Sequence record: NC_041994.1
Length of the DNA: 64,000 nt
Direction: 5' to 3' (one strand)
The notes beneath the pieces are model-generated. The model did not search any database, had not been told where the DNA came from, and saw nothing but the letters and a program-made list of their open reading frames with translations. The first letter of the stretch is position 1. The number at the start of each line of letters is the position of its first letter. Below, piece after piece: positions 7,076-63,989 of this stretch. The position numbers and the translations under genes are program-made.

Positions 7076-7507
7076 ATGTCCACCACAGAAAAGAATCCAA
7101 TCGCCAAGTCGATCGCTTACGCTGAGAAGCACGATCTCTTCGGCAAAATTACTCTGGCTGATAACGGCACCATCACCAGCAGCGACGATCTGGTCGAAAC
7201 CACCGCGGCGCTCGACGCCGGTCTGACCATGGACCAGGTGAAGAAGTTCCAGAAGTCCCTGGGCGAATTGATTCCGGCTGCGACCTACGTTGCTGGCCTG
7301 CGTGCTGAAGAAGGCTTCAAGGCAAACCCCGAGCTGACCGAAACCGGTTTCAGCTTCAACGTGGGTAGCCACCAGAAAGTCGCCGGCCTGTTCCACCGTG
7401 ACAACAAGGACCACACGGTCGTGGTAGTGGAAACCACTCACCGCTCCGCTGAGTTCCAGCGCGTTGTTACCCACATCAATGGCCTGTTCGACGACATCAA
7501 CAACTGA
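7076..7507 (+). CDS. Hypothetical protein ending in the FDDINN motif
   Basis: GGAG SD at 7064-7067 before ATG 7076, and strong codon bias from there. An alternative start at 6821 (GAGG SD) is possible. Confidence 0.75.
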   Translation: MSTTEKNPIAKSIAYAEKHDLFGKITLADNGTITSSDDLVETTAALDAGLTMDQVKKFQKSLGELIPAATYVAGLRAEEGFKANPELTETGFSFNVGSHQKVAGLFHRDNKDHTVVVVETTHRSAEFQRVVTHINGLFDDINN

Positions 7508-7524
7508 TCATCGACGGCCGCTGT

Positions 7525-7564
7525 GCATAGGGAAGCCTCCGGGCTTCCCTAGTTCTTATTTTTT
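7525..7564 (+). terminator. Intrinsic terminator
   Basis: GCATAGGGAAGCC-tccg-GGCTTCCCTA then TCTTATTTTTT. Confidence 0.7.
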
Positions 7565-7595
7565 ACAACAACCCCACTGCATAAAAGGGATACAC

Positions 7596-9044
7596 ATGTC
7601 TGAAGTTAAAATGGGTCACCTGGTAGTTCTCGAAGGTAACAACGGCGTAGGTAAAACTGCCCAGATGGAATTGCAAGCAGAGCGTCTGCGCGCTGCTGGC
7701 CGTGACGTCGTTATCGTTGCTGAACCGGGTGGTTCTGACCTGGGCGTGGCACTGCGCAAGATCCTGAAGGACCAGCGCGACATCAAACTGAACTACACCA
7801 CCGAACTGCTGCTGTTCGGCGCGCAGCGTGACGACATGTACCGCAAGGTCATCCGTCCTGCGCTGGATGCAGGCAAAGTGGTTCTGGCCGACCGTGGCTA
7901 CTTCTCCACCTACGCTTTCCAAGTGCACCCGCACGTGGAAGAGAACGGCATTGTGCTGCACGTGTTCAACGCCATGACCGGCATGAACATGCAACACCTG
8001 GGCAACGTTCCGCCGATCGTCATGAACATCGAAGTGCCAGAAGACGTTCGTCTGGCTCGTCTGGCTGCTGCCGGTGAACAGCGTGAAGAAGACGCGTTCG
8101 AAACCGATCGCTCTCCTGCGTACCTGGCCAAGGTTGCTGAAGGCTACAACATCCTGAAGCAACAACCGGGCGTGATGACCTTCGACGGTACCAAGGACAT
8201 CGACGAGCTGGCCGACCTGATCTTCGATCAAATCCAGGTCTGCATCAACCAGCGTGAGCAAGAAGCGCAGATCCTGGCTGAACAAACCGAAGAGCGTAAC
8301 CGTCTGCGTGCCGAAGCAGAAGAACGCGGTGAAGATCCAGACGCCGCTCAGCGCCTGGCTGCTGAAGAAGCTGCGAAGGCCAACGAGATCCAGGGCCTGA
8401 CGCTGGAAGAGATGGAAGATGAAATCAACAAGACCATCAACTTCCACGCTCAAGAACTGCTGGCTCGCATCGGTGGTGACTTCTCGCCGCACAAGGCTGA
8501 ATTCGATGCTCACGTTGTGACCCTGCGCAAGTGGGTTCGTTCGCACATCAACGAAGAGCGCGAGAAAGAAGTTCAGCTGACCGCTATGCAATCGCAACAG
8601 CGCGTTATGCAGATCTCCAGCAACATCGGCACCATGCTCGGCGGCTTCATGACTCTGATCAACATCGGCGAAATGGTCACCAAGCTGGAAGCAGACGGCC
8701 AAGTCCTGGACGTCGATCTGACCGCAGTCGAAGTACCGGTTGCTCCACCTGCTGACGAAGCGGGTGAGCAGGCTGAAGCCGCATTCGCTGAAGCAAGCGA
8801 TGCTGACGAAGCTCCAGCGTACGGCCGTGGCGAAACCCCAGTGCTGCAACACATCGACGAATCCGGCCATTACGCTGAAGGCCAAGCGCCGAAGGCAGAA
8901 GAAGCCGGTCTGGAAATGCGCGGCGGTGACACCGGCGGCGTACAGGTTGATGAAGCCAGCTTCAAGTCCGAAGTTGCTCCAGCGGCCGAAGCCAGCTACC
9001 CAGCCGAAGGTTCGCCTGCTGCGAGCGAAGCTAGCTCGCTGTAA
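7596..9044 (+). CDS. tmk: Thymidylate (dTMP) kinase with a long acidic C-terminal extension
   Basis: P-loop LEGNNGVGKT, AEPGGS, ELLLFGAQR, VLADRGYFSTYAFQ. AAGGGA SD before ATG 7596; the ORF-track start at 7464 runs through the terminator. Confidence 0.9.
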   Translation: MSEVKMGHLVVLEGNNGVGKTAQMELQAERLRAAGRDVVIVAEPGGSDLGVALRKILKDQRDIKLNYTTELLLFGAQRDDMYRKVIRPALDAGKVVLADRGYFSTYAFQVHPHVEENGIVLHVFNAMTGMNMQHLGNVPPIVMNIEVPEDVRLARLAAAGEQREEDAFETDRSPAYLAKVAEGYNILKQQPGVMTFDGTKDIDELADLIFDQIQVCINQREQEAQILAEQTEERNRLRAEAEERGEDPDAAQRLAAEEAAKANEIQGLTLEEMEDEINKTINFHAQELLARIGGDFSPHKAEFDAHVVTLRKWVRSHINEEREKEVQLTAMQSQQRVMQISSNIGTMLGGFMTLINIGEMVTKLEADGQVLDVDLTAVEVPVAPPADEAGEQAEAAFAEASDADEAPAYGRGETPVLQHIDESGHYAEGQAPKAEEAGLEMRGGDTGGVQVDEASFKSEVAPAAEASYPAEGSPAASEASSL

Positions 9045-9063
9045 AGTGAAAAAGAAGTAAGAT

Positions 9064-9133
9064 CTATATCACCATGCTGGTGGGTTGTACAACATTGGTG
9101 TCTCAATGTGTATAGCCACCCGTATGGTGATAT
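9064..9133 (+). promoter_or_regulatory. CTATATCAC motif embedded in a ~68-nt inverted repeat
   Basis: ATATCACCAT (9066-9075) pairs with ATGGTGATAT (9124-9133); inner GGTGG/CCACC and ACATTG/CAATGT pairs. Confidence 0.55.
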
Positions 9134-9155
9134 TATTAACTAGGAGCAAAGAAGA

Positions 9156-11530: not shown

Positions 11531-11531
11531 A

Positions 11532-12380: not shown

Positions 12381-12466
12381 GGGTAGATACGGAAGCGGCT
12401 CAAACCGGTCAGACTGTAAATCTGATGTCTACGACTTCGCAGGTTCGAATCCTGCTCTGCCCACCA
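12381..12466 (+). tRNA. tRNA-Tyr (GTA)
   Basis: Acceptor GGGTAGA/TCTGCCC, anticodon arm TCAGA-CTGTAAA-TCTGA, long variable arm, GGTTCGAATCC, encoded CCA. Confidence 0.95.
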
Positions 12467-12469
12467 AAC

Positions 12470-12546
12470 GTCGATGTAGCTCAGATGGTTAGAGTACCGG
12501 CCTGTCACGCCGGGGGTCGAGGGTTCGAAACCCTTCATCGACGCCA
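12470..12546 (+). tRNA. tRNA-Asp (GTC)
   Basis: Acceptor GTCGATG/CATCGAC, anticodon arm CCGGC-CTGTCAC-GCCGG, GGTTCGAAACC, encoded CCA. Confidence 0.95.
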
Positions 12547-12758
12547 TATTCTTGTTTTATGCACAGTTCTCAAGCGAGTGGTGAGACGGTCGAAAGATTG
12601 CCTGGGTAACTCTAAAACCAGGACGGTGCGCCAGTCATCCCTAGTCCGGGTGAATGTGGTGGGTGGCTTCCTCCTTCGGGATAGCCAGAGCGGGCGCCTA
12701 CTCGGGAAACCGACCCTGCGCCGCCGATGGTAAGACGGTGGCACATTTCTTCCGCAAT
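12547..12758 (+). ncRNA. Candidate structured RNA inside the tRNA cluster
   Basis: GAAA and cUUCGg tetraloop hairpins and a long-range AATGTG/CACATT pairing; no credible ORF. Confidence 0.4.
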
Positions 12759-12834
12759 TCCAGCATATCTCAGTTGGTAGAGAACACGGCTGTTAACCGT
12801 GGTGTCCCTGGTTCGAGTCCAGGTGCTGGAGCCA
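12759..12834 (+). tRNA. tRNA-Asn (GTT)
   Basis: Acceptor TCCAGCA/TGCTGGA, anticodon arm CACGG-CTGTTAA-CCGTG, GGTTCGAGTCC, encoded CCA. Confidence 0.95.
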
Positions 12835-15341: not shown

Positions 15342-15415
15342 CGTCATGTAACTCAGTCAGGTAGAGTAAACGGCTTTTAACCGTTAGGTCGCAGGTTCAA
15401 ATCCTGCCATGACCG
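15342..15415 (+). tRNA. tRNA-Lys (TTT), CCA not encoded
   Basis: GTCATG/CATGAC acceptor with a 1:72 mismatch, D-arm AACTCAGTCAGGTAGAGT, anticodon arm AACGG-CTTTTAA-CCGTT, GGTTCAAATCC. Confidence 0.85.
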
Positions 15416-19859: not shown

Positions 19860-20291
19860 ATGAACTGCTTTATCGATTGTGAGTTCAATGGTGGCCATGG
19901 GGAATTGATCTCTATGGCGATCGTTAGCGAAGATGGTCAACGGGTCTTCTATGAAGTCGTTGAACACAAGCAGCCTACTGAGGAGTGGGTTGTAGAAAAC
20001 GTGATGCCTATTCTCAACAAGCCAGCTATCCCAATGGCTGCCTTTAAAGAGCGTCTGAAGAAGTTCCTCGACGCCTTCCCAAAACTCACATTGATCGCCG
20101 ACCATGCGGCTGATTTGTTCTACTTCACCCAAGTGATCATTGGGGCTGAAGGCTGGATGATGGTTGAGTACCAACTCGATCTTCGGGTAGATCCTGCGAT
20201 CTCTGCGAAAAAATCCACCCAGAAACACAATGCTCTAGAGGACGCTAAGGCGCTTCGCCTTTCCTGGCTTCAACACAACGGCTTCATCTGA
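19860..20291 (+). CDS. DEDDh 3'-5' exonuclease/exoribonuclease (Rv2179c-like)
   Basis: FIDCEF (Exo I), ADLFYF, HNALEDAKA (Exo III). Confidence 0.8.
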   Translation: MNCFIDCEFNGGHGELISMAIVSEDGQRVFYEVVEHKQPTEEWVVENVMPILNKPAIPMAAFKERLKKFLDAFPKLTLIADHAADLFYFTQVIIGAEGWMMVEYQLDLRVDPAISAKKSTQKHNALEDAKALRLSWLQHNGFI

Positions 20292-26926: not shown

Positions 26927-27112
26927 ATGTTGTTTGTTCGGGACAATCTGGTTAATTCCATTGAACCGGATCAAACCTACTCGGCGGCGGAAGTGATCAA
27001 CTACGTGGACCAAGGCATCGAAGGCGTGCTCAAGGTGGTAGAGCAGCAATGCGAACCATGGTCACTCACCATCGACATCTGCCAAGCCTATTTCGACAAA
27101 ATCAATAACTGA
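26927..27112 (+). CDS. Small protein, minimal INN-module family member (61 aa)
   Basis: GAGG upstream of ATG 26927; ends QAYFDKINN. Confidence 0.65.
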   Translation: MLFVRDNLVNSIEPDQTYSAAEVINYVDQGIEGVLKVVEQQCEPWSLTIDICQAYFDKINN

Positions 27113-27120: not shown

Positions 27121-27591
27121 ATGCAAAAGATCCCTAATCTCTCGGCGAGTCTCTTCGCCAAGAGTTTCAGCAGCGGTATTGAAAAGAATGTACGTGAGTC
27201 GCTGAAGCGTTGCTACTCGATGTACGAAGCGTTGGACTTAGAAGCCCTCGTGCACAAGGCCACCACGCCACGCGAACATAAGCCATTGCCCAACGGCATG
27301 GCTCCAGTGTTGGTGGTGTTGGCTATCCGTGACGCCATGGTGCCGACGGTACGTAAGTTCCTCGATCGTGCGGTGCAGATGCATGGCTTGGGTAAGCAGG
27401 GTCCATTGGACATCACCACGGCAGCGCCGATGGTTACTGAGCTCTGCAAAGAAGCGGGTTACGAGGTACGCTTCGTCGAGATCCCGATCCACTTCCACAT
27501 GCACGAAGTGATCTGCGAAATCCAAAAGACCCGGGTGATTGCCGGGGTGATGGTCAGCGAGGTGGGTGATGCTACCGGTCCAGCGCTTTAA
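27121..27591 (+). CDS. Hypothetical protein
   Basis: 156-aa ORF in an operon. Confidence 0.75.
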   Translation: MQKIPNLSASLFAKSFSSGIEKNVRESLKRCYSMYEALDLEALVHKATTPREHKPLPNGMAPVLVVLAIRDAMVPTVRKFLDRAVQMHGLGKQGPLDITTAAPMVTELCKEAGYEVRFVEIPIHFHMHEVICEIQKTRVIAGVMVSEVGDATGPAL

Positions 27592-27595
27592 AGCC

Positions 27596-28111
27596 ATGCA
27601 GGGACAAAAGCGAGAACAACGCTTAGCGCAGTTGGCCGCCTATTGCCCTAATGCGACGATCATGAAGTTGGCTGATCTCGTAAGACGAGGCACCACCGGT
27701 ACTCGGGTGTGCCAATACCCTGACCGCACACGACCAGCTTTGTTCTATTTCACTGAAGACACCGAACCGGGTGAAGCACTCCTGCACCTGTTGCGTGAGT
27801 TCAACGTACAGAACGGACACGGGGCAATCAGTGAATCCAACTACATGGAGCACGTCACTCGGTTCTTCGAAACCTTTACGGCACTAGGCTGGGAAATCTA
27901 CTATGGTGGATGCTACGAAGCGCTGGGTATCCATGAACAGGTTTTAAAACACGAACTGGACCGTGGCCGCGTTGTTGGCATTGCATGGTCGGTATTAGAG
28001 GAAGACGGTGATGTCCACAGTAGCTATCGAACACCGCTTGAAAGAAACGATTGCAACCCCGACGGATCTGCTGAAGGCACTGTCGGTCGATCACCCCTAC
28101 TACCACAGTAG
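27596..28111 (+). CDS. Hypothetical protein
   Basis: Follows the upstream stop by 4 nt; the 3' end overlaps the next gene by about 100 nt. Confidence 0.6.
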   Translation: MQGQKREQRLAQLAAYCPNATIMKLADLVRRGTTGTRVCQYPDRTRPALFYFTEDTEPGEALLHLLREFNVQNGHGAISESNYMEHVTRFFETFTALGWEIYYGGCYEALGIHEQVLKHELDRGRVVGIAWSVLEEDGDVHSSYRTPLERNDCNPDGSAEGTVGRSPLLPQ

Positions 28112-28712
28112 CCAGTACGAGGAAACCTACCGGTCGCTGCCAGAGTTTCTCGATGCGTGGAAGGACTACGACATCGACCTCAACCGGATTATCCGCTGGG
28201 ATATCAAAGAGGTGAAGGAAGACTTCCCTAAACCGGAGGATATGGAAGAACGTGACTACGAACAATTCGGTCCATGGGGCACTCAATACGCTATGCTGCA
28301 CTTCGTAGCGCCGCGTAAGGGCCACACGTTCACGAACCGTATCCTGAACCTGAAATCGGGTGATATCCCACGTTTGTTTACGCTGCTCAAGAAACATTGG
28401 GACCACACGCAGATGCTCTGGGACCCACTGCCCAACATTGAGTACATCCCACCCTCTACGCCGCGTAGCCGTTTCGTGTCGAAGGTACGTGCCATTACTG
28501 ACATGTACACCATCGTCCCGTCTGGTGATCCTGAACACATCCGTAATAAAAGCAACGAGCGTGTGGTCGGTGCTGTGCGTGACGTGCTGGGGTTGATTGA
28601 TGACAGCTATATACTGCTGGAACAACCAGAGCACGACGACGTACCACTGGACCCGGGCTTGAACATCGCGGGGGAATTAGCCAAGACTTACTTTGATGAG
28701 ATCAACTCATGA
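28011..28712 (+). CDS. Two-domain protein: DHPYY-type phage domain plus C-terminal INN module
   Basis: GAGG SD. N-terminal DHPYY...DLNRIIRWD...APRKG; C-terminal VLGLIDDSYILL...[16 protein letters not shown]. Confidence 0.8.
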   Translation: MSTVAIEHRLKETIATPTDLLKALSVDHPYYHSSQYEETYRSLPEFLDAWKDYDIDLNRIIRWDIKEVKEDFPKPEDMEERDYEQFGPWGTQYAMLHFVAPRKGHTFTNRILNLKSGDIPRLFTLLKKHWDHTQMLWDPLPNIEYIPPSTPRSRFVSKVRAITDMYTIVPSGDPEHIRNKSNERVVGAVRDVLGLIDDSYILLEQPEHDDVPLDPGLNIAGELAKTYFDEINS

Positions 28713-34852: not shown

Positions 34853-35284
34853 ATGGATCATAAAGCGTACAACCGTAAGCTGGTCGAGCATTTGTTCAAC
34901 CTGCTCGAAACAGCACAGGGAGATCGCTGGTACATTCACTACGACCTGAACTTCATGGAAGAGAAGCAAGGGTTGGAACGCTACATGCAGCCCGATGGTG
35001 CGTTGGTTCTTAACTTCCATCCGGTGGCTTGCCGTAACTTCCACATCGGCGATGAGTTCACCACCTGCAACATGTCGCTGGATGGTTCCAAGCAACACCT
35101 GATCCTGCCACACAACTGCATCCGCGGTATCGTGTTGGAACTGGAGGAAGGTACTGTGCTGGTACCCGCCACACCGATCATGGCAGTAATGATGACCCCA
35201 CCTGCACCACCGGCGGATCTGATCGACGAGCCGGCTGTCCCCGAAACCCCGGACAACGTAGTTTCGTTGTTCCCTAAACACTAA
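34853..35284 (+). CDS. SspB-like (ClpXP adaptor) protein
   Basis: GALVLNFHPVACRNFHIGDE...SLDGSKQHLILP...GI core, then a Pro/acidic linker and a short terminal NVVSLF motif, matching SspB architecture. Confidence 0.65.
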   Translation: MDHKAYNRKLVEHLFNLLETAQGDRWYIHYDLNFMEEKQGLERYMQPDGALVLNFHPVACRNFHIGDEFTTCNMSLDGSKQHLILPHNCIRGIVLELEEGTVLVPATPIMAVMMTPPAPPADLIDEPAVPETPDNVVSLFPKH

Positions 35285-36925: not shown

Positions 36926-37384
36926 ATGCGCAGTGTTACCTTTCTTGCTCAGATCGACGCTACGGCGCTCACAACACCCCACTACGTTATCAGCATCAGC
37001 GATAAAGAAGACGTTCGGTTTAGTTGTGAACATTTCGATGTAATGCGCTTGAAGTTTGAGGACATCGAACAGCACTGCGCTGGGCAAGAACTGTTCTCGG
37101 TACAGCATGCCCGTGCTGTGTTGAAGTGGGCTAAGCGAGTGCCCGATGGAGCAGCCGTGGTGGTGCATTGTCAGGCTGGGGTTTCTCGGTCTGCGGCTAT
37201 TGCAAAGTTCATGAACGACCATCTTGGGTATCTGCTGTTATTGGACAAACCCTGTTACGGCAAGCTGGACAAATACAACGGGCATGTTTATGGCCTGTTG
37301 CGTTTGCTTGACTCTGACCGTAGTGCCTTGGCGATGATGCTTGAAGAAGAGCAAGATCGCCAGTCTGTCTTAGTTAAATGGTGA
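36926..37384 (+). CDS. Protein-tyrosine/dual-specificity phosphatase (CX5R family)
   Basis: VVVHCQAGVSRSAAIA active-site loop; upstream VISISD and LKFEDI. Confidence 0.85.
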   Translation: MRSVTFLAQIDATALTTPHYVISISDKEDVRFSCEHFDVMRLKFEDIEQHCAGQELFSVQHARAVLKWAKRVPDGAAVVVHCQAGVSRSAAIAKFMNDHLGYLLLLDKPCYGKLDKYNGHVYGLLRLLDSDRSALAMMLEEEQDRQSVLVKW

Positions 37385-37388: not shown

Positions 37389-37709
37389 ATGAATCTTTCT
37401 ATTCAGTTACCCGACCCTCTGCGTATTGCCAAAGAAGGTCTGTTAGAAGAAGTCATGGCATCAGCGACCTACAACGCTGACTGGGCCATGGAAAAGATGG
37501 AGCTCAGCAATGAGACCCGGGAGCTGGTGCACTATGCTGCACGCCATGTGGCGGCGGGTGTGCTGGACATCATCGACGGGGGTACTGACCAAGGTCGTTA
37601 CCTACTGCTACCTATGTCGGTGGTCACGAACCTGACTGAGCATACGCCGAATCTGGCGGGTGAGTTGTCAGAAGCACTTCAAGACCTTTATGAGGGGATC
37701 AACAATTGA
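37389..37709 (+). CDS. INN-module paralog 1 (tandem array)
   Basis: LPDPL...VLDIIDG...YLLLP...PNLAGEL...LYEGINN. Confidence 0.8.
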   Translation: MNLSIQLPDPLRIAKEGLLEEVMASATYNADWAMEKMELSNETRELVHYAARHVAAGVLDIIDGGTDQGRYLLLPMSVVTNLTEHTPNLAGELSEALQDLYEGINN

Positions 37710-38041
37710 ACGCTTTTCGACTGAACATTCCTGATCCATTGGCCGATGAGCGCCGTGTGTTGGGTAATGCGTTTTCTGACGTTTACAAGTCTGTCATGTA
37801 CGACATGAACGAACGTTATCCCGGTGAGGACTACGTCGATGTGGTGCGTGACTGTGTAGAAACCGCCATGACCGAAACACTGCGAGTCTTCGACGGACGT
37901 GCCGGGTTCGGTGAAGGTAACAGTACGTACCTGGTCCTGCCGATGGACATGGTCGAACCACTGCGTGACGATGACGTCCCGACTTTGGCTGGTTCGTTAG
38001 CCAGCACACTGCTTCGTGATTTCAGTCGCATCAACAGCTGA
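37706..38041 (+). CDS. INN-module paralog 2 (tandem array)
   Basis: TTG start overlapping the previous stop; IPDPL...LRVFDG...YLVLP...PTLAGSL...FSRINS. Confidence 0.8.
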   Translation: MNAFRLNIPDPLADERRVLGNAFSDVYKSVMYDMNERYPGEDYVDVVRDCVETAMTETLRVFDGRAGFGEGNSTYLVLPMDMVEPLRDDDVPTLAGSLASTLLRDFSRINS

Positions 38042-38048: not shown

Positions 38049-38369
38049 ATGCATTTAGAATTGATTCTGCCTGATCCGGTAGAAGAAGCCCGCAAGACGT
38101 TCCTTGGCGATATCGTCAACATGCGTGAAGCGGCTATTCTTCTGTACGCCACTAACCGTGATGATCCTTTCATCGGTCCTGTAGCCAACGCTGTCAACTA
38201 CGTCACCGGCCAGTTCTTCGAGTACCTCGATGGTGGTGAGTTGCACAATGCGGGTTACACCGTGTTGCCGAACCAGATGATCCGTCGGGGCACTGAAGGT
38301 GTCCTGCCGAACATCGCAGGGGATCTGCGTAGCACCTATGATTCCCTGTTCGAGGACATCAACGACTGA
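38049..38369 (+). CDS. INN-module paralog 3 (tandem array)
   Basis: GAGGTG SD; LPDPV...FEYLDG...YTVLP...PNIAGDL...LFEDIND. Confidence 0.8.
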   Translation: MHLELILPDPVEEARKTFLGDIVNMREAAILLYATNRDDPFIGPVANAVNYVTGQFFEYLDGGELHNAGYTVLPNQMIRRGTEGVLPNIAGDLRSTYDSLFEDIND

Positions 38370-38377: not shown

Positions 38378-38788
38378 ATGAAAGCCGATAAAGAGTCACC
38401 CTTGGGGCAAGCACTCAACCGTGCCGCCACCGAGGCGCTGGAAGGCCGTCCCGATGTACTACACCAACCACGTGTGGATTTTATCGAGAAGGTCTTAGAC
38501 GCTCGCGACGACGCCTATGAAGACTTCGCGTGTGTGATGCCGCCTGAGTTCCACGAACCAGTCCATAAGGCGATCACATCGGCTGTGGTAAAGACGTTGG
38601 GTGTTTTGGACGACGGTTACGTGTTATTGCCAAGTATTGACCGCCTGGTAGAATCGGAGGCCGCGTATCTGGTCGTCCCGATCCGACCACACACGGAGGG
38701 TCCTCGGGCGATAGACACCAAGACGTTCAATGTCGCTGGCGATCTGGCAGTGATCTTCTCCACGATCTACGATGACGTCAATAACTGA
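38378..38788 (+). CDS. INN-module paralog 4 (tandem array)
   Basis: GAGGTG SD; TLGVLDDGYVLLP...NVAGDL...IYDDVNN. Confidence 0.8.
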   Translation: MKADKESPLGQALNRAATEALEGRPDVLHQPRVDFIEKVLDARDDAYEDFACVMPPEFHEPVHKAITSAVVKTLGVLDDGYVLLPSIDRLVESEAAYLVVPIRPHTEGPRAIDTKTFNVAGDLAVIFSTIYDDVNN

Positions 38789-38795: not shown

Positions 38796-39116
38796 ATGGA
38801 CGTAAAGATCGAAGTTCCAGATCCCATACAGCGGGAGCGTCAATTCCTCCTGATGCAAATCTGGGACGTCCGTAACGATGTTCTGGATTTGGTCGGTCCA
38901 AACTTCGAAGACAACCAGGCAACATTTGTCGTGGAAGCAATTGACAAAACCATCGATGGGGTGTTGGGAATACTCGACGGTGTGGATCATCAACCCAAAG
39001 ACTACGTGCTCCTACCGCGCCACTTCTTCAAAGCTGACGAACGACTGCCTAACATGAATGGTAACCTCGCCGAAACCTTCGAAAAGATGTTCTTGACCAT
39101 CAACGAAGACGACTGA
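38796..39116 (+). CDS. INN-module paralog 5 (tandem array)
   Basis: GAGGTG SD; VPDPI...VLGILDG...YVLLP...PNMNGNL...FLTINEDD. Confidence 0.8.
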   Translation: MDVKIEVPDPIQRERQFLLMQIWDVRNDVLDLVGPNFEDNQATFVVEAIDKTIDGVLGILDGVDHQPKDYVLLPRHFFKADERLPNMNGNLAETFEKMFLTINEDD

Positions 39117-42713: not shown

Positions 42714-43244
42714 ATGAATATCATCGAGGCGTTTAAACGCTGTCCACCGGGCTACTCCATCAAAGACCGTCGTTCCGGTTGGAATGAGTACCACGTTCAA
42801 TACGGTCGTAATGAAAAGGGTGAGCTGTATTGGACCGCCGGTATGACGGTGGGTGGGATACTGAACCCTACCGACGTCACCGTAGCGCGCTACAAAGGCG
42901 ATGACTACGAAGTCTACATGTGGGGTCAACGTGAGCCTGCAACGATCCTACCGACGTTTGAGCAGGCCTACGCAGAGATTGCCAAGAACTCTGTAGAGAC
43001 CCATGGCAAGAACCTTGTGGGCAAGATCCACAGTACGGTTACTGAGCGCATGAATGCCAGCATCGCCAGTGGCGTCGATCCCGTGGTAGCAAAAGATCTG
43101 GTAATGGGGACTACCCGAGACATCTTGGGTATTCTGGACACGAAGGCTGAGGTCAATCATGTCTATCGGATCGCTCGAAACAAGTACAACGCCCCCAATA
43201 TGGCGGGTGGGTTGTTGGCCATGTTTGACGAGATAAATGGCTGA
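42714..43244 (+). CDS. Tad2/DUF2829-like N-terminal domain fused to a C-terminal INN module
   Basis: GGAG SD. N-terminus MNIIEAFK...RRSGWN...NPTD...DDYEVY; C-terminus ILGILD...PNMAGGLLAMFDEING. Confidence 0.7.
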   Translation: MNIIEAFKRCPPGYSIKDRRSGWNEYHVQYGRNEKGELYWTAGMTVGGILNPTDVTVARYKGDDYEVYMWGQREPATILPTFEQAYAEIAKNSVETHGKNLVGKIHSTVTERMNASIASGVDPVVAKDLVMGTTRDILGILDTKAEVNHVYRIARNKYNAPNMAGGLLAMFDEING

Positions 43245-43327: not shown

Positions 43328-44545
43328 ATGAACCTACCGCAACCAACACACGACGCTAACGGCGAGCGTATCCCTTATTCATCCCTTCCTAAAAACGAAC
43401 CTACCGGTCGGGGTATGATCAACCCAGCACATCTGGTCATGTTGGAAAAGACGGGCGAAGACCACACTCAACGCGAAAGCCCTATCCGTGCGTTCGGTGA
43501 ATCAGAATCCCGGCAGAGCATCAGCCGTATGAACGTCGATCGACTGTTCGAGCAGTATGCCCAATCTACACTGGGTGCTGGTGAAGGCGTGCTCACCCGT
43601 CTGAATGACCTCGGACGTCCTGAGTTCGTCAAGCTGGGTCAGATTGAGCAGGTTATCATGGGTCGTGGTGATAAGTCCATGGTTTACCCTAAGGAGCCCC
43701 TGAAGAACGCCGAGTACTTCAATCGCAAGATGGAGCTCACCGCACACAATGCGGACTTCGACGGCAATGCACTGAGTGGTCCACCTCCTGAACCGGAACG
43801 CAATATTCCACGGTTCATCTTCGAGCACAACACGATCCTTTACCGCGACCTGGCTGATCTCACAGTCAAGGTACGGTTGCCGTATAAGGAGTGTTTGTTT
43901 GTCCAGCAGCTTTATGCTGACCTGCCTGAACCGACTGCCCCGAAGACGATGCAGGAACACTGGATTGCCGAGAACAATCCTAAACCACAATGGCCTAACA
44001 CCTACGAGATCTACGCACTGGAACTCTCGGAAACCAAGATCTTCTTTGTGTTCGATCTGTACGGTGAGAAGATCAGTGTGCAGGTCAATCGGTTCCGCAG
44101 CAAGGCTAACCCTGAGCATTGCGAATACCGTGCGTATCTGGTGGAAGGTCCTGATAAGCAACTACCCGCTGATCACGAACACCAAGCAAACTTCAAAGAT
44201 CCAGCCTTCCGCACCGTAGCGCCTGTACTTGCATTCTTGGAAGGTATGTCGCAGGGTGTTTATACACTGGAGCGAGAAGGTGTTCAAGTACCGCCGAGCA
44301 TGGTGCCACCTCCTGCGAAGGAAGGTATCGAGTTCAAGGTACGCAGTCTGATCCCGAATCAACCGGTGAAAGAATCGGTTTGTTTGGGTGGTACGCATGC
44401 TTCGCCTCGCGAGCACCATCGTCGTGGTTACTGGCGTCGCAGTGCTAGCGGTAAGAAAGTGTGGATCGGTCCTGTTGTGGTTAACAAAGGCAAGACCGAA
44501 GGGAAGATCATCAAAGATTATCAAATTGTGGACCCTACGAAATGA
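43328..44545 (+). CDS. Hypothetical multi-domain protein with an internal NADFDGN motif and a C-terminal basic SPREHHRRGYWR motif
   Basis: AAGGA SD; 405 aa. Confidence 0.8.
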   Translation: MNLPQPTHDANGERIPYSSLPKNEPTGRGMINPAHLVMLEKTGEDHTQRESPIRAFGESESRQSISRMNVDRLFEQYAQSTLGAGEGVLTRLNDLGRPEFVKLGQIEQVIMGRGDKSMVYPKEPLKNAEYFNRKMELTAHNADFDGNALSGPPPEPERNIPRFIFEHNTILYRDLADLTVKVRLPYKECLFVQQLYADLPEPTAPKTMQEHWIAENNPKPQWPNTYEIYALELSETKIFFVFDLYGEKISVQVNRFRSKANPEHCEYRAYLVEGPDKQLPADHEHQANFKDPAFRTVAPVLAFLEGMSQGVYTLEREGVQVPPSMVPPPAKEGIEFKVRSLIPNQPVKESVCLGGTHASPREHHRRGYWRRSASGKKVWIGPVVVNKGKTEGKIIKDYQIVDPTK

Positions 44546-45333
44546 TCTCTAAACGTTTACCTCAACCTTACGTTGCACCTAAACCAGCCTGCCGGGCTTT
44601 CATCGACTTTGAGTTCAACGGTAAAGGCGGTCGCGTACTGTCGGCGGCTATCGTTACCGAAAGCGGGGCAGAGTGGTACGAGGTCATGGACTACACCGAT
44701 ATTGACGTCGTGCCATGGGTGGCTGAGAACTGCCTTCCTAATCTGGGTAAGGAGCCGATCTCGGCTGCTGCGTTCCAGGCTTCGTTCGAGGAGTTCATCA
44801 ATCAGTTTGGGTACATCGAGTTCATGTACAACGCCCACGCTGATCGTCGTTATCTCGACGAGTTGCTGCTCAACATGCCGCAACAGCCATTGCATCGCTG
44901 TGTTCGCGATGGCTTCTTGTCGGCGCGTTCTTCACTGATTCCTCACAATGCCTTGGCTGATGCCCGGGCTATTGTGGCTCAGGTTTGTGGTAGCGCTGAG
45001 TTTCGTGATGAACTCCCAGTCGGTCCAACCGAGCGGGACATGTTCAAAGCGATGTGGGCTAAGGGTTATCGTTTCGATGCCCGTGATGTCCGACTCACGC
45101 TGACTAAGGTCGAGCAGCACGACGGTAAGCCTTATGGTCACCGTGCTCAACTTGAAATCGCAGCATTCGAACAAGGCCTGAGCATCATGGATCTGATCCA
45201 TCGTGATCCAACGGCGGTGTTCTGCACTGGCGTCGTCGAGATCACCCCGATCCACAATCGCAGTAATGCATCAGCTATACCGATGCATGGTGTGACCACG
45301 CTTCCCATCTACTTCTACATCCGTAAGGACTGA
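44542..45333 (+). CDS. DEDDh 3'-5' exonuclease (paralog of 19860) with an extra C-terminal domain
   Basis: FIDFEF, ADRRYL, HNALADARA. Confidence 0.8.
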   Translation: MISKRLPQPYVAPKPACRAFIDFEFNGKGGRVLSAAIVTESGAEWYEVMDYTDIDVVPWVAENCLPNLGKEPISAAAFQASFEEFINQFGYIEFMYNAHADRRYLDELLLNMPQQPLHRCVRDGFLSARSSLIPHNALADARAIVAQVCGSAEFRDELPVGPTERDMFKAMWAKGYRFDARDVRLTLTKVEQHDGKPYGHRAQLEIAAFEQGLSIMDLIHRDPTAVFCTGVVEITPIHNRSNASAIPMHGVTTLPIYFYIRKD

Positions 45334-47253: not shown

Positions 47254-47607
47254 ATGGACCCATCATTGCGCAGTCACCTGTTAGTAGAACTGCTGGCACA
47301 TCGTCGCAATATGGACGATTACATTCCCCCTGACGAACACAAGAAGATGATCGCCAAGGCTGAAGCCGATCCAGTGAAGCACCACACTGTTGGTGTATAC
47401 AAGAACGGCGACTACAAGCAGAACTGCGTACCGGGTTCTGAACTCGAACAACACGTCAAGTACAACACCGAGGCCCGTTGGGGTCGTGGTTTGTTCGTTG
47501 ACGGTAAGTGCGTCCACAAAGGCTACCTCACCGATGAGGAAGTCGCTGAGTGGGAAGCCAAAATCAAAGACTGGCCAATGCCAGCGATCCGTTATCCACG
47601 ACACTAG
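47254..47607 (+). CDS. Hypothetical protein
   Basis: GAGG SD; C-terminal RWGRGLFVDGKCVHKGY motif recalled from phage hypotheticals. Confidence 0.75.
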   Translation: MDPSLRSHLLVELLAHRRNMDDYIPPDEHKKMIAKAEADPVKHHTVGVYKNGDYKQNCVPGSELEQHVKYNTEARWGRGLFVDGKCVHKGYLTDEEVAEWEAKIKDWPMPAIRYPRH

Positions 47608-48118: not shown

Positions 48119-48808
48119 ATGACAAACGAACTGAAAGCTACCCCAGGTCAGTTGGCTGAACTGAAACTGTTGGTGCCGGGCATTGAACGTCGCATCAATG
48201 AGTTCCAGATGGATACGCTTGCCTGCAACATGGACTTCATCATGTTCCGTGATGTCGATGTGCGTGCGTTCCTTGCGCATTCGGTCAAGGCTGCTCGCGC
48301 TACCGAACACGATCTGGTCGACGTGGTGCGTAAGATCAACTTCGCACGCCTGGGTCCGATTATGGAAGCCCAGAAGTTTGCAGCGATCGAGCAAAACGGT
48401 TACGCCGTACAACCCATCATCGCTGGTGATAAACCAGCGTATGCGTACACCATCGGTTTGACGGGGTTGGTTGGGTTTGAGCTGTTTGCACATGCTGGCG
48501 GTGACGTCGGTATTCTTACCCATGTCGTACACCACTACGCAGAACTGGCCCAGCGACACGAACACATCGAGCATGAACGTAACGACGTAGCCGCGATGCG
48601 TAACCGTCCTAGACAGGGTGTCCGTACACTGGCTGTGCCGGTGGAGCCGATGGTGGCCAAGCAGGACATCCTCAAGCAAACCTTCGGTGAAGAGCCGAAG
48701 CGGGTATATCAAATCCTCATTGCCGACTCAGACAACCGTCTACCCGGCGAATCTGGCTACGACAGTACCAACTGGCCGCAGCCGCGTCTCCCACGTCCAC
48801 TAGGTTAA
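48119..48808 (+). CDS. DUF4262-like protein
   Basis: GAGGTG SD; GYAVQPI...AYAYTIGL...ELF...QILIADSDNRLP. Confidence 0.65.
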   Translation: MTNELKATPGQLAELKLLVPGIERRINEFQMDTLACNMDFIMFRDVDVRAFLAHSVKAARATEHDLVDVVRKINFARLGPIMEAQKFAAIEQNGYAVQPIIAGDKPAYAYTIGLTGLVGFELFAHAGGDVGILTHVVHHYAELAQRHEHIEHERNDVAAMRNRPRQGVRTLAVPVEPMVAKQDILKQTFGEEPKRVYQILIADSDNRLPGESGYDSTNWPQPRLPRPLG

Positions 48809-58972: not shown

Positions 58973-59272
58973 ATGGATATCAGAAAGGCTCAGACGTCGA
59001 TTGAAGAGCTTAACGAGGTCATGGAGATGGTATCCGACAGTTTCTATACTGTCGTTTCCTTTAACCGCGATAAAGCGATCGGTGGGTTAGTGCAACCGGG
59101 TATGTCTACCGATCAAGAGAAGGTTATTGCCAATGCCGTTAATGCAGGAGTACGGGCTACGCTTAACAGCATTGAAGAACTCGATGGGGAGATACGGTTT
59201 AAGACAAGAGGGTGTACTGCCATTTTGTCAGGTGATCTCTGTCGAGGTATGTTTGAGGAAATAAATACATAG
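58973..59272 (+). CDS. INN-module family protein
   Basis: GGAGG SD before ATG 58973; ends AILSGDLCRGMFEEINT. Confidence 0.7.
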   Translation: MDIRKAQTSIEELNEVMEMVSDSFYTVVSFNRDKAIGGLVQPGMSTDQEKVIANAVNAGVRATLNSIEELDGEIRFKTRGCTAILSGDLCRGMFEEINT

Positions 59273-59939: not shown

Positions 59940-60842
59940 ATGCAATTTGCAAACCTGAATATCGCTGATCTGCGTTGGGCTATGGGCGCTGTACGCGGTA
60001 ACGAAGAGATCCTGACTCAATACGTATTGGCTGGTCTGCTTAACGTTCACCTGCGCAGTGTGCCTATGTCGATTGTGCATCGTGAACAGCGTGAGTTGAA
60101 GTACACCTACCCGATCCTGCGCTTTGATGTTTACCCGGACGTACGTAAGCCATCCATGGGACGTGAGTACACCCACTGGATGGTTGCACCTGTTATCGAC
60201 CAGCCAAGCGTCAAGCAGGAACGCATTGTGATCCACAATCGTGAATCCGATACGCTGTCAGTCGTGCTCAACATCGGTTACACCGAGCCACCTAAAGTGG
60301 AAGAGCCGCCGGTAGAAGAACGTCAGGATAGCCGTCGTGATACCTACGGCGAACGAAGCCACTTCTTCAAGTCGAACAATATCGACATGAGTTGGGGCAC
60401 TACATGGACTGAAGTGGCGCGTATGCAGGTGGAGCTCATGCGTCTGTGGGCTGAAGCGTTCCCGGGTCAATCCTATCGCACAGCGCGGTTCCAGGAAGGG
60501 GCTGTCGTGATCGCGAGTCGTGACCTGCGTTGCGAACAATGGCCACAGGTACCGATGTATCGTGTTGTGGCGCAAGTGCAGCCATTCATCAACGATGGTC
60601 GTGGTTCAGGTGATACCGGGTTGGTAGATACCATCATCCAGCCGCTGGGTCACATGTTTGGCGGTTCGCCGTCCTACGTACACAGCGGCAACCTGTTGAC
60701 CCTCAACCAGTACGAAGCGCGTCTGGTTGAACCAGCCTCGTCTGTGTTCAATGGTCCGCGTGGTGACTACGAACCTTCCAGCTTCATCGTGGAAGAAGTC
60801 ATCAAGAAGGTCCCTGACTCCGTACGCGAACTGTTCCGCTGA
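59940..60842 (+). CDS. Hypothetical protein, paralog of 60880
   Basis: AAGGA SD; shares YVLAxLLN, WxEAFP, YRVVxQ, DTxIQPL with the next gene. Confidence 0.8.
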   Translation: MQFANLNIADLRWAMGAVRGNEEILTQYVLAGLLNVHLRSVPMSIVHREQRELKYTYPILRFDVYPDVRKPSMGREYTHWMVAPVIDQPSVKQERIVIHNRESDTLSVVLNIGYTEPPKVEEPPVEERQDSRRDTYGERSHFFKSNNIDMSWGTTWTEVARMQVELMRLWAEAFPGQSYRTARFQEGAVVIASRDLRCEQWPQVPMYRVVAQVQPFINDGRGSGDTGLVDTIIQPLGHMFGGSPSYVHSGNLLTLNQYEARLVEPASSVFNGPRGDYEPSSFIVEEVIKKVPDSVRELFR

Positions 60843-60879
60843 TTGCTCCTCACCTCACTTTTTAAAGCAAGGACTAACC

Positions 60880-61710
60880 ATGCAAAATACATTGTTTACC
60901 GCTGAAGACATCCGTTCGACCTTGGGTCGTGTTAACGAGCCTGAAGTACTGTTCGCCTATGTGCTGGCAGCATTGCTCAATGACCGACTGAAGATGTCGG
61001 AGATGCATCTGGAGCACAAGCCTTCACGTAACGCTGAACCGGTCTCCTATGCGATTGTGCGCTTCGGTGTCGAGCGTCAGAAGGAAAGCCTCCCACCACA
61101 CACCCGGCCGGGCTTTAAACTGACGGCATACGTGGACGAACCAAACCTCGGGTACGAGTTTCACCCGGTCAACCAGAACCCAGCACGGACTTCGCCGGGC
61201 ACGCTGTATATGTCGAACATCGGGTTTAAGGTCGATGCTCAGCATAATACGCATAGCTGGTGGTCACTGGCAGTCAACGAACACGATTGGTTAGAAGTGC
61301 TGGGGTTGTTTGCGAGCCTGCAAGCAGATTGGGCAGAAGCGTTCCCGGCGCTTGACCTGTCTACTCGGGTATTCGAACCAGGACAAGTGGTTTACTGGAG
61401 CCGTAGCACCAACTCCGATATGTTCCCAACTATCCAACAGTACCGCGTGGTGACACAATCAGAACTGCGGCCTATTGGCATGCATAATGAAGCCGTGGAT
61501 ACGTTGATCCAACCACTGGCCGTGCTGTTCGGAAACAGTAACCAAGTCATCCCTGTGCACAGCCGTGCGTTGATGACCGAAGGTGAATTCCTCAAAAGCA
61601 TGGCCCTTAGTCCGAGTGGTTTTGCGGGTCCACAGCGGCACGAAGCTACACCGTGGTTCGAAAAAGAGGTCATTGCTAAAATGACCCCCGATCTGATCCG
61701 CGCCTACTAA
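60880..61710 (+). CDS. Hypothetical protein, paralog of 59940
   Basis: AAGGA SD before ATG 60880. Confidence 0.8.
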   Translation: MQNTLFTAEDIRSTLGRVNEPEVLFAYVLAALLNDRLKMSEMHLEHKPSRNAEPVSYAIVRFGVERQKESLPPHTRPGFKLTAYVDEPNLGYEFHPVNQNPARTSPGTLYMSNIGFKVDAQHNTHSWWSLAVNEHDWLEVLGLFASLQADWAEAFPALDLSTRVFEPGQVVYWSRSTNSDMFPTIQQYRVVTQSELRPIGMHNEAVDTLIQPLAVLFGNSNQVIPVHSRALMTEGEFLKSMALSPSGFAGPQRHEATPWFEKEVIAKMTPDLIRAY

Positions 61711-61719: not shown

Positions 61720-62001
61720 ATGTTTCTGTATCGGATCTACGACAACACCCGGGAGTATAGCTTCCGGGGTGGTATTCGTGCGGCGATCATTGCAGCTGAA
61801 TCGGAAGAGGAAGCACGTAATGTGGTTATCGAGGACGACAAGCACGGTGAGCATGTTCAACTGAACACGCCGGACTATACGTCTGAACTGCTCGGCTTTT
61901 GCTCCACTGTTAAAGCAGGGGTGGTCTTGGTTGATTATGACTACGACTACCTCGAAGTGACTTACGACTGGCACAAAGAGTGCCCCACTGACAACGACTG
62001 A
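61720..62001 (+). CDS. Small hypothetical protein
   Basis: AAGGAG SD; IIAAESEEEAR resembles VVAESQGDA of 59645. Confidence 0.75.
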   Translation: MFLYRIYDNTREYSFRGGIRAAIIAAESEEEARNVVIEDDKHGEHVQLNTPDYTSELLGFCSTVKAGVVLVDYDYDYLEVTYDWHKECPTDND

Positions 62002-62045
62002 TGCTAGACATCTAAGGCAAGCCAACTTCATACAGAGAGCGTCCC

Positions 62046-62918
62046 ATGCCACATACTTCTCGTTTTGGTAGTGCGACATTGAATCAAGAACACTTCGACA
62101 GTCCGCAACTGGGGGACGGATGGCAGGAGCAATTCTGTTATCACTTCATCGTTGTGGATGTGTTGAACAACGGCAACATCGTTATCGTTCCTGTTCATCG
62201 CGAGGGGCAGGGTCAGGTGGCTCAGTACGACAAAGCGTACGAGATCACCAAAACCCAGTTCCATGACGAGGTGTATTACCGTCACGGTTTCATGCGTAAC
62301 ACTTTCCTGTTGGATGTTGTACCAGGTCATCGCGAGATTGCCGCAGCCTGGAAGGAGCAATACCAAGGACAGTACTTGGCGGTGACCCAACCCGTTGCGA
62401 ATCCCGTTGTAGTGTGTGGGTTTCGTGGCGTGGGAAAGTCTCAGGTGACAAACCTGTGCCATGGCGAGAAGAAAGCATTGGACGTTTCCACTGGTGGTGA
62501 TATCGACTACTACGTGCAACTGGTGACCAAACCACCCGCGGGATTGGACATCTTGTTGTTGCCCGCAGATCCGATTGTGATGGCTGCATTAACACACTCG
62601 GGTGTTCGGTATCACATGGTGTATCCTCACGCTAGTTTGTGCAGTGCGTATTTGCACCGCATACACCGGCGTGGGGCTACGGCCGCTGATGTGCATCGCT
62701 TTAAAGCAGGATGGGTTGACGCCGTGCATGACTGTCATTACCAACCTGGCTGCGTGCATTGGCAACTTCACGACAAACAATACCTAGTCGATGTGCTGCC
62801 CAAGATTATCCACATGGAACACTTAGATGACCATGTGTGGGACGCACTCGAAAAGAAGGTGCTTCGTTTGGTTAAACCAGTTGAACTGGAAAAACCGACG
62901 TTGACCGCAACGGTATGA
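62046..62918 (+). CDS. Two-domain protein with a C-terminal P-loop (NMP-kinase-like) domain
   Basis: VVVCGFRGVGKS Walker A, then GVRYHMVYP and RIHRRG as in phage kinase-like P-loop proteins. Confidence 0.65.
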   Translation: MPHTSRFGSATLNQEHFDSPQLGDGWQEQFCYHFIVVDVLNNGNIVIVPVHREGQGQVAQYDKAYEITKTQFHDEVYYRHGFMRNTFLLDVVPGHREIAAAWKEQYQGQYLAVTQPVANPVVVCGFRGVGKSQVTNLCHGEKKALDVSTGGDIDYYVQLVTKPPAGLDILLLPADPIVMAALTHSGVRYHMVYPHASLCSAYLHRIHRRGATAADVHRFKAGWVDAVHDCHYQPGCVHWQLHDKQYLVDVLPKIIHMEHLDDHVWDALEKKVLRLVKPVELEKPTLTATV

Positions 62919-62949
62919 GCTAACCCCTCTTTGCAAGGAACCAAAGAAA

Positions 62950-63336
62950 ATGGCAACTTTTCAAGTCACCTCGCGTGACCGCAAACACCACAGCGCCTCG
63001 GCTTCCGTGCGGGAATTCCAGAGCCGTGATCGTACACAACGCGACCCGTCGGCACACCCTGTTCAAGTGCGCGACTTCGAAGCCATCCGTACCCAGCGTG
63101 GTTCGATGGCAGAACCAGCGGCCCCTAGCCACCCGGTAACACAGGAGCCGATCGAGTACAAAGAGGTTCAGCTCAACAAACGTTACGTGTCCAAACGGGT
63201 TGGCAAAACGATCATTGCCTATCCTGTGGATGTAAAGAAAGGCAAGGTCATCTTGAAACGTGACCTCGAAGCGAAGGATAGCTACACCGAATCCCGAGCT
63301 GTCTTCGACAAGTACTTCGTGCTTGACGAGGTGTAA
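62950..63336 (+). CDS. Hypothetical protein (disordered N-terminus with VREFQ/VRDFE repeat, SH3-like C-terminus)
   Basis: AAGGA SD. Confidence 0.75.
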   Translation: MATFQVTSRDRKHHSASASVREFQSRDRTQRDPSAHPVQVRDFEAIRTQRGSMAEPAAPSHPVTQEPIEYKEVQLNKRYVSKRVGKTIIAYPVDVKKGKVILKRDLEAKDSYTESRAVFDKYFVLDEV

Positions 63337-63339
63337 TGG

Positions 63340-63600
63340 GTGAGATTGGTTAAGTCGTGCCGCCTCCTTAGAAAGAGGCTACTTAACCGTTGGCAATACT
63401 GGCGCCTGCTGACTGAGGTTGAAAAAGCAGGCGGTGCTGTTGTCAACAAGGTAGCCACCTGCACACAGTGTACCCCCGAAACGATGTGCTGCCCGGGTCA
63501 TCACTGCGAACACTCAACCGCCATGCAACAGTACACATGGCGGTTGCGTTTGCTGGATAACGAATACTGGCGGATTAAATTATCTGGAGCTAACCCATGA
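63340..63600 (+). CDS. Small Cys-rich hypothetical protein
   Basis: GAGGTG SD; CxxC...CCxxxxC cluster. Confidence 0.6.
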   Translation: MRLVKSCRLLRKRLLNRWQYWRLLTEVEKAGGAVVNKVATCTQCTPETMCCPGHHCEHSTAMQQYTWRLRLLDNEYWRIKLSGANP

Positions 63601-63989
63601 ACGATGATGATGTTGTAACCATCGACCCCGAATTGGAAATGGAAGATCGCGAAGAAGAGGATGAGGACGACACGCCCGTGGCGGTCCAACGCATCCAAGA
63701 CCTTCAGCGTGAGTTCATCCACTCTGTGCAAATGGTGATGGAACCTTTGGTCGTGGCCAACCCTGAACACCGGGGTTCGATCGAGGCCACAGCCGAAGGC
63801 ATCCTGCAAGTGATTGAAGGCAACGGCAGCGACGAGGGCTACGTTCTCGTTAAACGTGACGATGCCAATTTCGCCATGGTCCCTTGCGTGAAGGAAGTCT
63901 ACGAAGAACACCTGCGTGATTTCGTGGATGCCACCGGTCTGGACATCTCCGTAGGTCTCACCTCGATGTTCGACGACGTCAATAACTGA
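63597..63989 (+). CDS. INN-module family protein with an acidic N-terminus
   Basis: GGAG SD; ILQVIEG...YVLV...DISVGLTSMFDDVNN; followed by the start of a CGGCATA element. Confidence 0.8.
   Translation: MNDDDVVTIDPELEMEDREEEDEDDTPVAVQRIQDLQREFIHSVQMVMEPLVVANPEHRGSIEATAEGILQVIEGNGSDEGYVLVKRDDANFAMVPCVKEVYEEHLRDFVDATGLDISVGLTSMFDDVNN

Follow-up and report, generated by a model that had tools for sequence, protein, structure and literature searches.

A C-terminal module family of Pseudomonas phage Noxifer shares its terminal tail with the phiKZ gp186 family: a possible docking element

Introduction

For most genes of the nucleus-forming jumbo phages no function is known, and it is largely open how, early in infection, the encoded proteins meet their partners. 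A 64-kb stretch of the genome of Pseudomonas phage Noxifer (record NC_041994.1; this whole stretch of 64,000 nucleotides is called the window below, and is identical in sequence to positions 186001-250000 of MF063068.1) raises the question in a particular form, as small proteins scattered along it end in nearly the same residues. An earlier sequence-only reading had proposed that about 13 open reading frames (ORFs) of the window form a dispersed family, and that their common C-terminus, (F/Y)(D/E)(D/E)(I/V)N-x-stop, may be an addressing or docking tag. These ORFs correspond to gp201, gp216, gp234, gp236, gp249-253, gp261, gp274, gp290 and gp297, all labelled 'hypothetical protein' in GenBank. 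Are the proteins related, is their ending conserved, and what might it do?

Noxifer, a phage of P. fluorescens SBW25 with a genome of 278 kb, is assigned to the genus Noxifervirus of the family Chimalliviridae. As it encodes a chimallin (gp50; PF25677, expectation value (E) 2e-184), a PhuZ protein (gp31, according to the annotation) and split RNA polymerases, it is a nucleus-forming jumbo phage. The analyses were performed on the 96 annotated coding sequences (CDS) of the window and on the 2011 ORFs of at least 40 amino acids (aa) obtained by six-frame translation of the whole genome.

One C-terminal module in eleven Noxifer proteins

According to the sequence profiles, one homologous module is present in gp234, gp236, gp249-253, gp261, gp290 and gp297 of the window and in gp307 outside it, which gives 11 Noxifer members. 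The all-against-all phmmer comparison linked only the proteins of the tandem array gp249-253, together with gp236 to gp252. Profile-profile comparison (hhalign) gave 96-98% within the array, whether or not the last 8 residues were included, and 95% for gp236 against gp252 (92% without the last 8 residues); the E of 1e-18 obtained for gp236 with the broad profile has to be read with the presence of its C-terminal part among the profile seeds. When a profile of diverse members was searched against the 2011 ORFs, gp261 (E 5e-6), gp297 (E 1e-3) and gp290 (E 0.05) were retrieved. The same three were again the top non-seed sequences once the last 8 residues had been cut from both the profile and the targets (8e-4, 4e-3 and 0.38, respectively), with gp290 in third place in both searches. 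The hhalign comparison to the module gave 93.8% for gp261, 91.2% for gp297 (80.5% after trimming) and 90.2% for gp290. A wider profile from which gp234 and gp307 had been left out ranked both of them next, with and without the tail; gp234 was the best non-seed of the 2011 ORFs (E 0.009) and the second after the last 8 residues were cut (E 0.31). All five of the non-seed proteins found after trimming (gp261, gp297, gp290, gp307 and gp234) carry the tail that had been removed, and the homology of the module is therefore independent of the tail. This tail-independent similarity was found for gp236, gp249-253, gp261 and gp297, by rank only for gp290, gp234 and gp307, and not for gp201, gp274 and gp216.

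The proteins that carry the module, the tail or both are the following (window coordinates except for gp307):

gp201: 6821..7507, plus strand; 228 aa; tail only, not a module member; homologue of phiKZ gp186
gp234: 26927..27112, plus strand; 61 aa; shortened stand-alone module, with the pre-strand helix and the terminal helix
gp236: 28011..28712, plus strand; 233 aa; N-terminal domain, then the module at about 28449-28712
gp249: 37389..37709, plus strand; 106 aa; stand-alone module, first of the tandem array; phrog_18616
gp250: 37706..38041, plus strand; 111 aa; stand-alone array module; positions -5/-4 of the tail not acidic
gp251: 38049..38369, plus strand; 106 aa; stand-alone array module; the module protein that was modelled
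gp252: 38378..38788, plus strand; 136 aa; stand-alone array module with an insertion
gp253: 38796..39116, plus strand; 106 aa; stand-alone array module; three acidic residues beyond the tail
gp261: 42714..43244, plus strand; 176 aa; unrelated N-terminal region, then the module at about 42969-43244
gp290: 58973..59272, plus strand; 99 aa; divergent stand-alone module
gp297: 63597..63989, plus strand; 130 aa; acidic N-terminal stretch, then the module at about 63687-63989
gp307: genome positions 256002-256271, outside the window; stand-alone module with the tail

The dispersed family that had been proposed is thus real, with corrections to its membership. All of the C-termini that had been quoted are present in the sequence at the ORFs concerned, and 10 of the 13 ORFs do have the tail as their ending. 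gp253 is a true member with an extension, and the same three acidic residues are found in its orthologue P0003. Two candidates had to be rejected as chance look-alikes: gp274 (ORF at 49832), whose orthologues end differently and which no profile links to the module, and gp216 (ORF at 14750), judged from the profiles, none of which links it to the module. The conditions under which the proposal was to be given up were examined, and the family withstood them for 11 proteins.

In every protein in which it was found, the module occupies the extreme C-terminus, in proteins of 203, 217, 233, 253 and 506 aa with different N-terminal parts; no internal copy was found. As had been described, the module is met by itself, in tandem copies and behind unrelated N-terminal regions. 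It stands alone in the gp249-253 array, gp290, gp307 and the shortened gp234, and in the fusions it follows one of at least six distinct N-terminal regions. Three of these fusions are in Noxifer. The N-terminal domain of gp236 is shared with KVP40-like Vibrio phages, and the tblastn matches of gp236 in other phages cover only aa 21-140. The N-terminal region of gp261 (aa 13-84) also occurs in a hypothetical protein of an Alcaligenes phage, its only outside relative; the earlier description of this region as Tad2-like (DUF2829) found no support in the sequence profiles, with no Pfam match at E up to 1 and no PHROG match at E up to 0.1. The third fusion, gp297, bears an acidic stretch. In the relatives, the module ends proteins of 203, 217, 253 and 506 aa, and a further subfamily of 240-253 aa is present only there.

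In a large protein collection, 34 relatives of the array and of gp297 were found, on contigs from <1 kb to 284 kb, the largest of which are Noxifer-sized (267-284 kb). When the core alignment was searched exhaustively with HMMER against 1.84 billion representative proteins, only 23 matched at E up to 1e-3, so the family is narrow. Three of the 23 are long repetitive proteins and probably spurious, and the ten matches whose origin was looked up come from metagenomic sources only. A single-protein locus search for relatives matched only Noxifer itself. No Pfam family covers the module or was found in any member, and no member had a match in the PDB by sequence. Among the PHROGs, gp249, gp251 and gp252 match phrog_18616 end to end and gp236 matches phrog_7880, both of unknown function; this classification leaves the array unlinked to gp236, gp261, gp290, gp297, gp234 and gp307, and does not mention the tail. 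With the lineage-specific expansions of small genes in jumbo phages, the family shares its tandem copies, rapid divergence, small gene size, lack of known function and neighbours of nucleotide metabolism. It differs from them in that the Noxifer copies keep one sharply defined terminal element, common to a family of another predicted fold.

Directly before the array lies gp248 (window 36926-37384), which resembles dual-specificity phosphatases (Pfam DSPc, E 9e-7, below the cut-off; phrog_5614). A gp248 homologue (E 9e-35; contig L029, 4952-5419) lies beside two genes with the module on a metagenome contig of 5.9 kb that is more distantly related, and none is present at this place in contigs L013 and L014.

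Anatomy and predicted structure of the module

The module comprises about 65-105 aa and is predicted to form three helices with a conserved Tyr-x-[Val/Leu]-Leu-Pro segment, the last helix being amphipathic. The pattern of 60-80 aa that had been noticed upstream of the ending is real: in the core alignment, D61, Y70, L73, G91, L93 and N105 of gp251 are invariant, and P8, D9, R15, A48, L57, P74, N88 and A90 are nearly so. The AlphaFold2 model of gp251 based on this alignment has a mean predicted local distance difference test score (pLDDT) of 68 and a predicted template modelling score of 0.60; its helices span 12-33, 42-60 and 93-105. The conserved segment 61-92 and the last three residues are modelled with low confidence (pLDDT <50), a feature often seen in models for parts that become ordered only on binding. 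A Foldseek search with the gp251 model returned nothing significant from the PDB and only Noxifer paralogues from BFVD. Among the latter was a weak match to a 99-aa Noxifer protein, probably gp290 as judged by its length only (template modelling score 0.52, E 3.0, not significant).

Conservation of the C-terminal tail

The tail consists of an aromatic residue at -6, acidic residues at -5 and -4, Ile or Val at -3, Asn at -2, one small polar residue and the stop (positions are counted back from the stop, -1 being the last residue). Ten of the 96 annotated CDS of the window have Asn as the penultimate residue, Ile or Val before it and an aromatic residue at -6, where 0.04 are expected from the window composition (Poisson P ~4e-21). 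None of the ~1,700 unannotated ORFs of the whole Noxifer genome has this ending, and gp307 is the only further real gene with it among the 2011 ORFs of the six-frame scan. A chance origin of the tail was rejected on both grounds, the excess over expectation and the lack of any spurious ORF with the tail. The codons under the tail differ synonymously between the members, so selection acts on the protein and not on the DNA, and a DNA-level cause was rejected as well.

With 12 subfamilies weighted, position -6 is Phe (0.83) or Tyr (0.17), Asp/Glu make up 0.67 of position -5 and 0.65 of position -4, position -3 is Ile (0.78) or Val (0.22), position -2 is Asn (0.99) and position -1 is Ser, Asn, Thr, Asp or Gly. 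The conservation of the terminal residues in orthologues is borne out by a tally of 84 distinct module sequences and 44 distinct sequences of the gp186 family, treated below: 122 of the 128 stop one residue past the Asn or Ser (80 of 84 and 42 of 44, respectively). The tail is kept in 34/34 relatives of the array and gp297, in 17/17 distinct orthologue sequences of gp297, in four orthologues of gp290, in several distinct orthologues of gp252 (a set of 8 sequences including gp252 itself) and in the orthologues of gp236 and gp250. The orthologue sets are shallow, with none for gp234 and one each for gp261 and gp253. Judged from the alignments, the tail stands out by its retention between subfamilies that are otherwise unrecognisable. 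The acidic pair is kept across subfamilies otherwise <25% identical; lying outside the hydrophobic positions of the helix register, it presumably faces the solvent.

The stop codons of these genes show a bias of their own. TGA ends nine of the ten tail-bearing genes of the window, compared with 49% of all its CDS, and in gp234, gp250, gp251 and gp252 the stop is directly followed by GGTG, with a start codon 8-10 bases later. The stop may for this reason be part of the ribosome-binding site of the next gene.

gp201 and the phiKZ gp186 family

The ORF at 7076 had been described as keeping only the terminal motif, and this proved correct. In the hhalign comparison, gp201 aligned with the module over the last 10 columns only (14.5%), and the value fell to 0.2% after trimming. 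The start given for it is another matter: the ORF is more likely the 228-aa gp201, which starts at 6821 in GenBank and whose orthologues of 226-230 aa align over the full length.

The sequence-only reading knew no named phiKZ-like family with such a signature; gp201, however, belongs to one. It matches phrog_16459 at 1.9e-32, the family of phiKZ gp186, 201phi2-1 gp283 and PhiPA3 gp222, and its tblastn relatives (E 1e-27 to 8e-11) are found in PA1C, PhiPA3, 201phi2-1, Phabio, Psa21 and phages of the phiKZ species, with annotation notes that name phiKZ gp186 and 201phi2-1 gp283. Over the C-terminal 134 aa, gp201 is 30-44% identical to this family and has the same tail; the Noxifer-clade members differ in an extra N-terminal helical domain of about 70-90 aa. 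The gene adjoins that of thymidylate kinase in Noxifer (gp202), PhiPA3 and PA1C, where the neighbour is shown. Among the distinct sequences of the family, 42 of 44 end one residue after Ile/Val-Asn or Ile/Val-Ser. The ten module proteins of the window do not belong to phrog_16459, and the described function of this family is limited to a knock-down phenotype in phiKZ. There, gp186 is an early transcript whose antisense knock-down strongly cut plaque counts (10.1101/2024.07.31.605949), and it was scored '+++' both for plaque reduction and for reduction of the chimallin level as a non-core, uncharacterised gene (PMC12571901). An identity of gp186 with JADA, the activator of Avs5, was considered and rejected, JADA being phiKZ gp124.

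In the AlphaFold2 model of gp201 (pLDDT 78), a disordered linker connects the N-terminal helical domain to an alpha/beta domain (95-228), and Foldseek found no significant match to it in the PDB. The order of secondary-structure elements differs between the models of gp201 and the module. In the last 14 residues, the two families are alike in their hydrophobic register (-14, -10, -7, -6 and -3) and in the acidic pair. A scoring matrix of the 14 C-terminal columns, trained on the module alone, ranked 2001 other ORFs of Noxifer with gp201 at the top (14.1 bits, z 5.6; the next 3.4). In a phiKZ-species genome, of which 101 of 277 kb (782 ORFs) were scanned, the same matrix placed the gp186 homologue first (13.0; the next 5.9). 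A gp186 homologue is also present on all four Noxifer-sized (267-284 kb) module-bearing contigs, and the cultured phages with gp186 other than Noxifer are without the module.

Other genes of the window and of related contigs

Four tRNA genes (Tyr, Asp, Asn and Lys) are annotated at 12381-12834 and 15342-15415 of the window, amid small hypothetical genes. Two ORFs without GenBank annotation, at 27566-28111 (181 aa) and 63340-63600 (86 aa), are probably missed genes, because related contigs encode clear orthologues of both in the same position (E 1e-104 and 1e-34, respectively). Further paralogue pairs were detected by phmmer: gp292/gp293 (59940-61710; 2e-23) and gp227 (19860-20291)/gp263 (44542-45333; 6e-18), with gp227 annotated as a putative exonuclease. 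The products of gp268 (47254-47607) and gp270 (48119-48808) have similar C-terminal tails, Trp-Pro-x-Pro followed by an Arg-rich part, and may form a second small family with a common C-terminal element; DUF4262 is present in the gp270 orthologues.

Outside the window, a few kb downstream of gp307, gp315 (genome 259584-260924; contig L007, 10584-11924) encodes a Bcs1-like AAA ATPase that is kept in the relatives (BCS1_N 3.7e-12 and AAA 2.5e-18, both above the Pfam cut-offs). The related metagenome contig L013 contains, at 2833-3552, a gene for a GIY-YIG/I-TevI-like homing endonuclease directly after the dCTP deaminase gene, which is absent at this place in Noxifer and in contig L014. A protein of 347-353 aa encoded by contigs L010 (14620-15663) and L011 (11570-12631) has a weak precomputed Pfam match to AcrVA2-like; judged from position and length, it is probably the counterpart of gp262 (window 43328-44545). 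For gp262 of Noxifer itself, no Pfam match was obtained at E up to 0.1.

Discussion

The tail common to gp201 and the module points to a shared docking site, without proving it. We put at roughly 0.45 the probability that the terminal helix, as predicted from the alignments and models, is a docking element shared by the gp186-type protein and the module proteins, with a putative site on a partner. In its favour we count the tail-independent homology of the module and its constant C-terminal place, the fixed end of the tail, the acidic pair retained between divergent subfamilies, the sharing of the tail with a non-homologous family, the low-confidence segments of the gp251 model, the gp186 homologue on every large module-bearing contig and the early, important role of phiKZ gp186. 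The module, specific to the Noxifer-like chimalliviruses, has been duplicated, giving the 11 Noxifer copies, and joined C-terminally to several unrelated N-terminal regions. Through the terminal helix, gp186-type and module proteins would bind one site on a phage or host partner, together or in competition, and each module protein would bring a different N-terminal 'cargo' to the common site. Throughout the Pseudomonas chimalliviruses, gp186 would use this site, and the module family would be a clade-specific expansion of the clients of the site. We infer, in other words, that the sharing of the tail reflects a common binding site. A bolder form of the same idea holds that the tail is a true carboxy-terminal docking signal and that, in the Noxifer clade, the gp186 site is exploited by an adaptor-like family which delivers at least six N-terminal domains there or competes for it; this form we consider unlikely.

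Several observations weigh against docking, and most of them lead to the explanation that the tail is purely structural: Phe and Ile would pack into the core, Asn would cap the helix, the end would be fixed by descent, and the likeness to gp186 would stem from an old shared sub-domain or from convergence on a stable helix end, without any common partner. The hydrophobic tail residues (-10, -7, -6 and -3) continue the hydrophobic stripe of the helix, which is the same in both families over the last 14 residues, and Asn is a common helix C-cap. In the gp201 model, the terminal helix (210-227) is the last element of the alpha/beta domain and fairly confident (pLDDT ~75-83). As the tail is in register with this amphipathic helix, it could be structural. 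The idea of an addressing or docking tag thus fits the data, but a structural role is also compatible with the register and with the confident helix of gp201. Within each orthologue set, moreover, conservation in the last 8 columns exceeds that of the remaining columns only slightly. Asn is replaced by Asp in two remote members and by Ser in half of the gp186 family, and the 2-5 additional residues in four of the 84 module sequences show that the free carboxylate need not lie at exactly +1. What a structural role accounts for less well is the off-register acidic pair, which persists between highly diverged paralogues and in a family whose predicted fold differs, and the share of Asn at -2, although Gly, Ser and Asp would cap a helix too. 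Nor would packing lead one to expect that the sole non-module protein of the genome with the tail scores far above all others, or that the final three residues of gp251 lack confident packing in the model. On balance, we regard a purely structural tail, the main rival to docking, as somewhat unlikely. A further point against docking comes from the scanned part of the phiKZ-species genome, in which no tail-bearing ORF other than the gp186 homologue was found. The tail is therefore specific to the module and gp186 families, and a general chimallivirus tag is unsupported.

The tail helices might instead bind each other and form mixed oligomers by bundling or swapping, for example with gp201 as the hub. 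The common amphipathic register would suit such an arrangement, as would the gp186 homologue on every large module-bearing contig and the low confidence of the monomer model around the conserved segments. The gp186-family proteins, however, keep the tail in phages that have no module at all, so the tail has a role without module partners, and mixed oligomers appear improbable. More improbable still is a degradation or adaptor signal by which a protease system would remove the tail-bearing proteins at a set time. The candidate adaptor would be gp246 (window 34853-35284), two genes upstream of the array, which in relatives, too, precedes thymidylate synthase and the array. It is SspB-like by several comparisons: Pfam SspB at E 0.013, below the cut-off; phrog_8945 'SspB-like' at 3.4e-5; and, with a profile of the gp246 orthologues, ten best PDB sequence matches that are all SspB, in the same register, at E ~0.05. 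An SspB-like ClpXP adaptor has been described in the chimallivirus RAY (PMC10299810). Against a degron, the tail is predicted to be helical and to lie within a domain, not in a loose peptide, although the last three residues of gp251 have low confidence; it ends in small polar residues, and gene neighbourhood is the sole link between gp246 and the tail.

Least probable of all, in our judgement, is an address that would bring the proteins into the phage nucleus, to its shell or into the capsid; shell and capsid were among the destinations envisaged for the tag. Noxifer does form a nucleus, and an address would be expected to take the form of a terminal motif carried by varied cargo. Import in chimalliviruses, through PicA/Imp1, likewise bears on the sorting of proteins in this virus family, but according to a recent review it depends on surface patches of the folded cargo, 'not a terminal signal sequence' (PMC12908238), and no link of the tail to import was found. 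The knock-down of phiKZ gp186 already lowers chimallin levels (PMC12571901), so gp186 acts before or at nucleus formation. Attachment to the shell is disfavoured by the C-termini of Noxifer chimallin and PhuZ, which are unlike the tail and also led us to reject mimicry of the C-terminal segments of these two proteins. For capsid packaging, no gene of the family is annotated as a virion protein, and no Noxifer virion proteome was found in the literature. The inner-body proteins packaged into the head of phiKZ-like phages have an N-terminal propeptide that is cut by the prohead protease, whereas the Noxifer motif is C-terminal.

For the favoured docking element there is a likeness, by description only, to cellular C-terminal docking tips such as the SSB tip, the HbYX motif and the ClpX-binding tail of SspB, which also consist of a few conserved residues at a free end, in part acidic and in part hydrophobic. 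These elements let proteins with different bodies bind one site; they sit on flexible linkers and end in hydrophobic or aromatic residues, or have Tyr as the penultimate residue. The Noxifer tail differs in that it closes a predicted helix, its penultimate residue being Asn and its last one small and polar. An SSB-type tip, which goes with an OB-fold body and a flexible linker, does not agree with a tail that is predicted to be helical and ends in Ser, Asn, Thr, Asp or Gly, on members without a Pfam domain, and an HbYX-type motif, whose penultimate Tyr follows a hydrophobic residue, does not agree with a penultimate Asn in 0.99 of the subfamily-weighted sequences.

Conclusions

Eleven orphan genes of Noxifer are tied into one previously undescribed family whose module has sharp boundaries. 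Through a short terminal element, this module is connected to gp186, one of the few uncharacterised phiKZ genes whose knock-down strongly lowers both plaque counts and the chimallin level. Should the tail be only structural, a clean new domain family and a corrected annotation would still result. If the tail docks, finding its partner would give a role to a dozen proteins at once and show the target of gp186. If it is a true docking signal, the tail would be the first such linear element, for sorting or docking, to be described for the nucleus-forming phages, and would offer a handle on the role of gp186.

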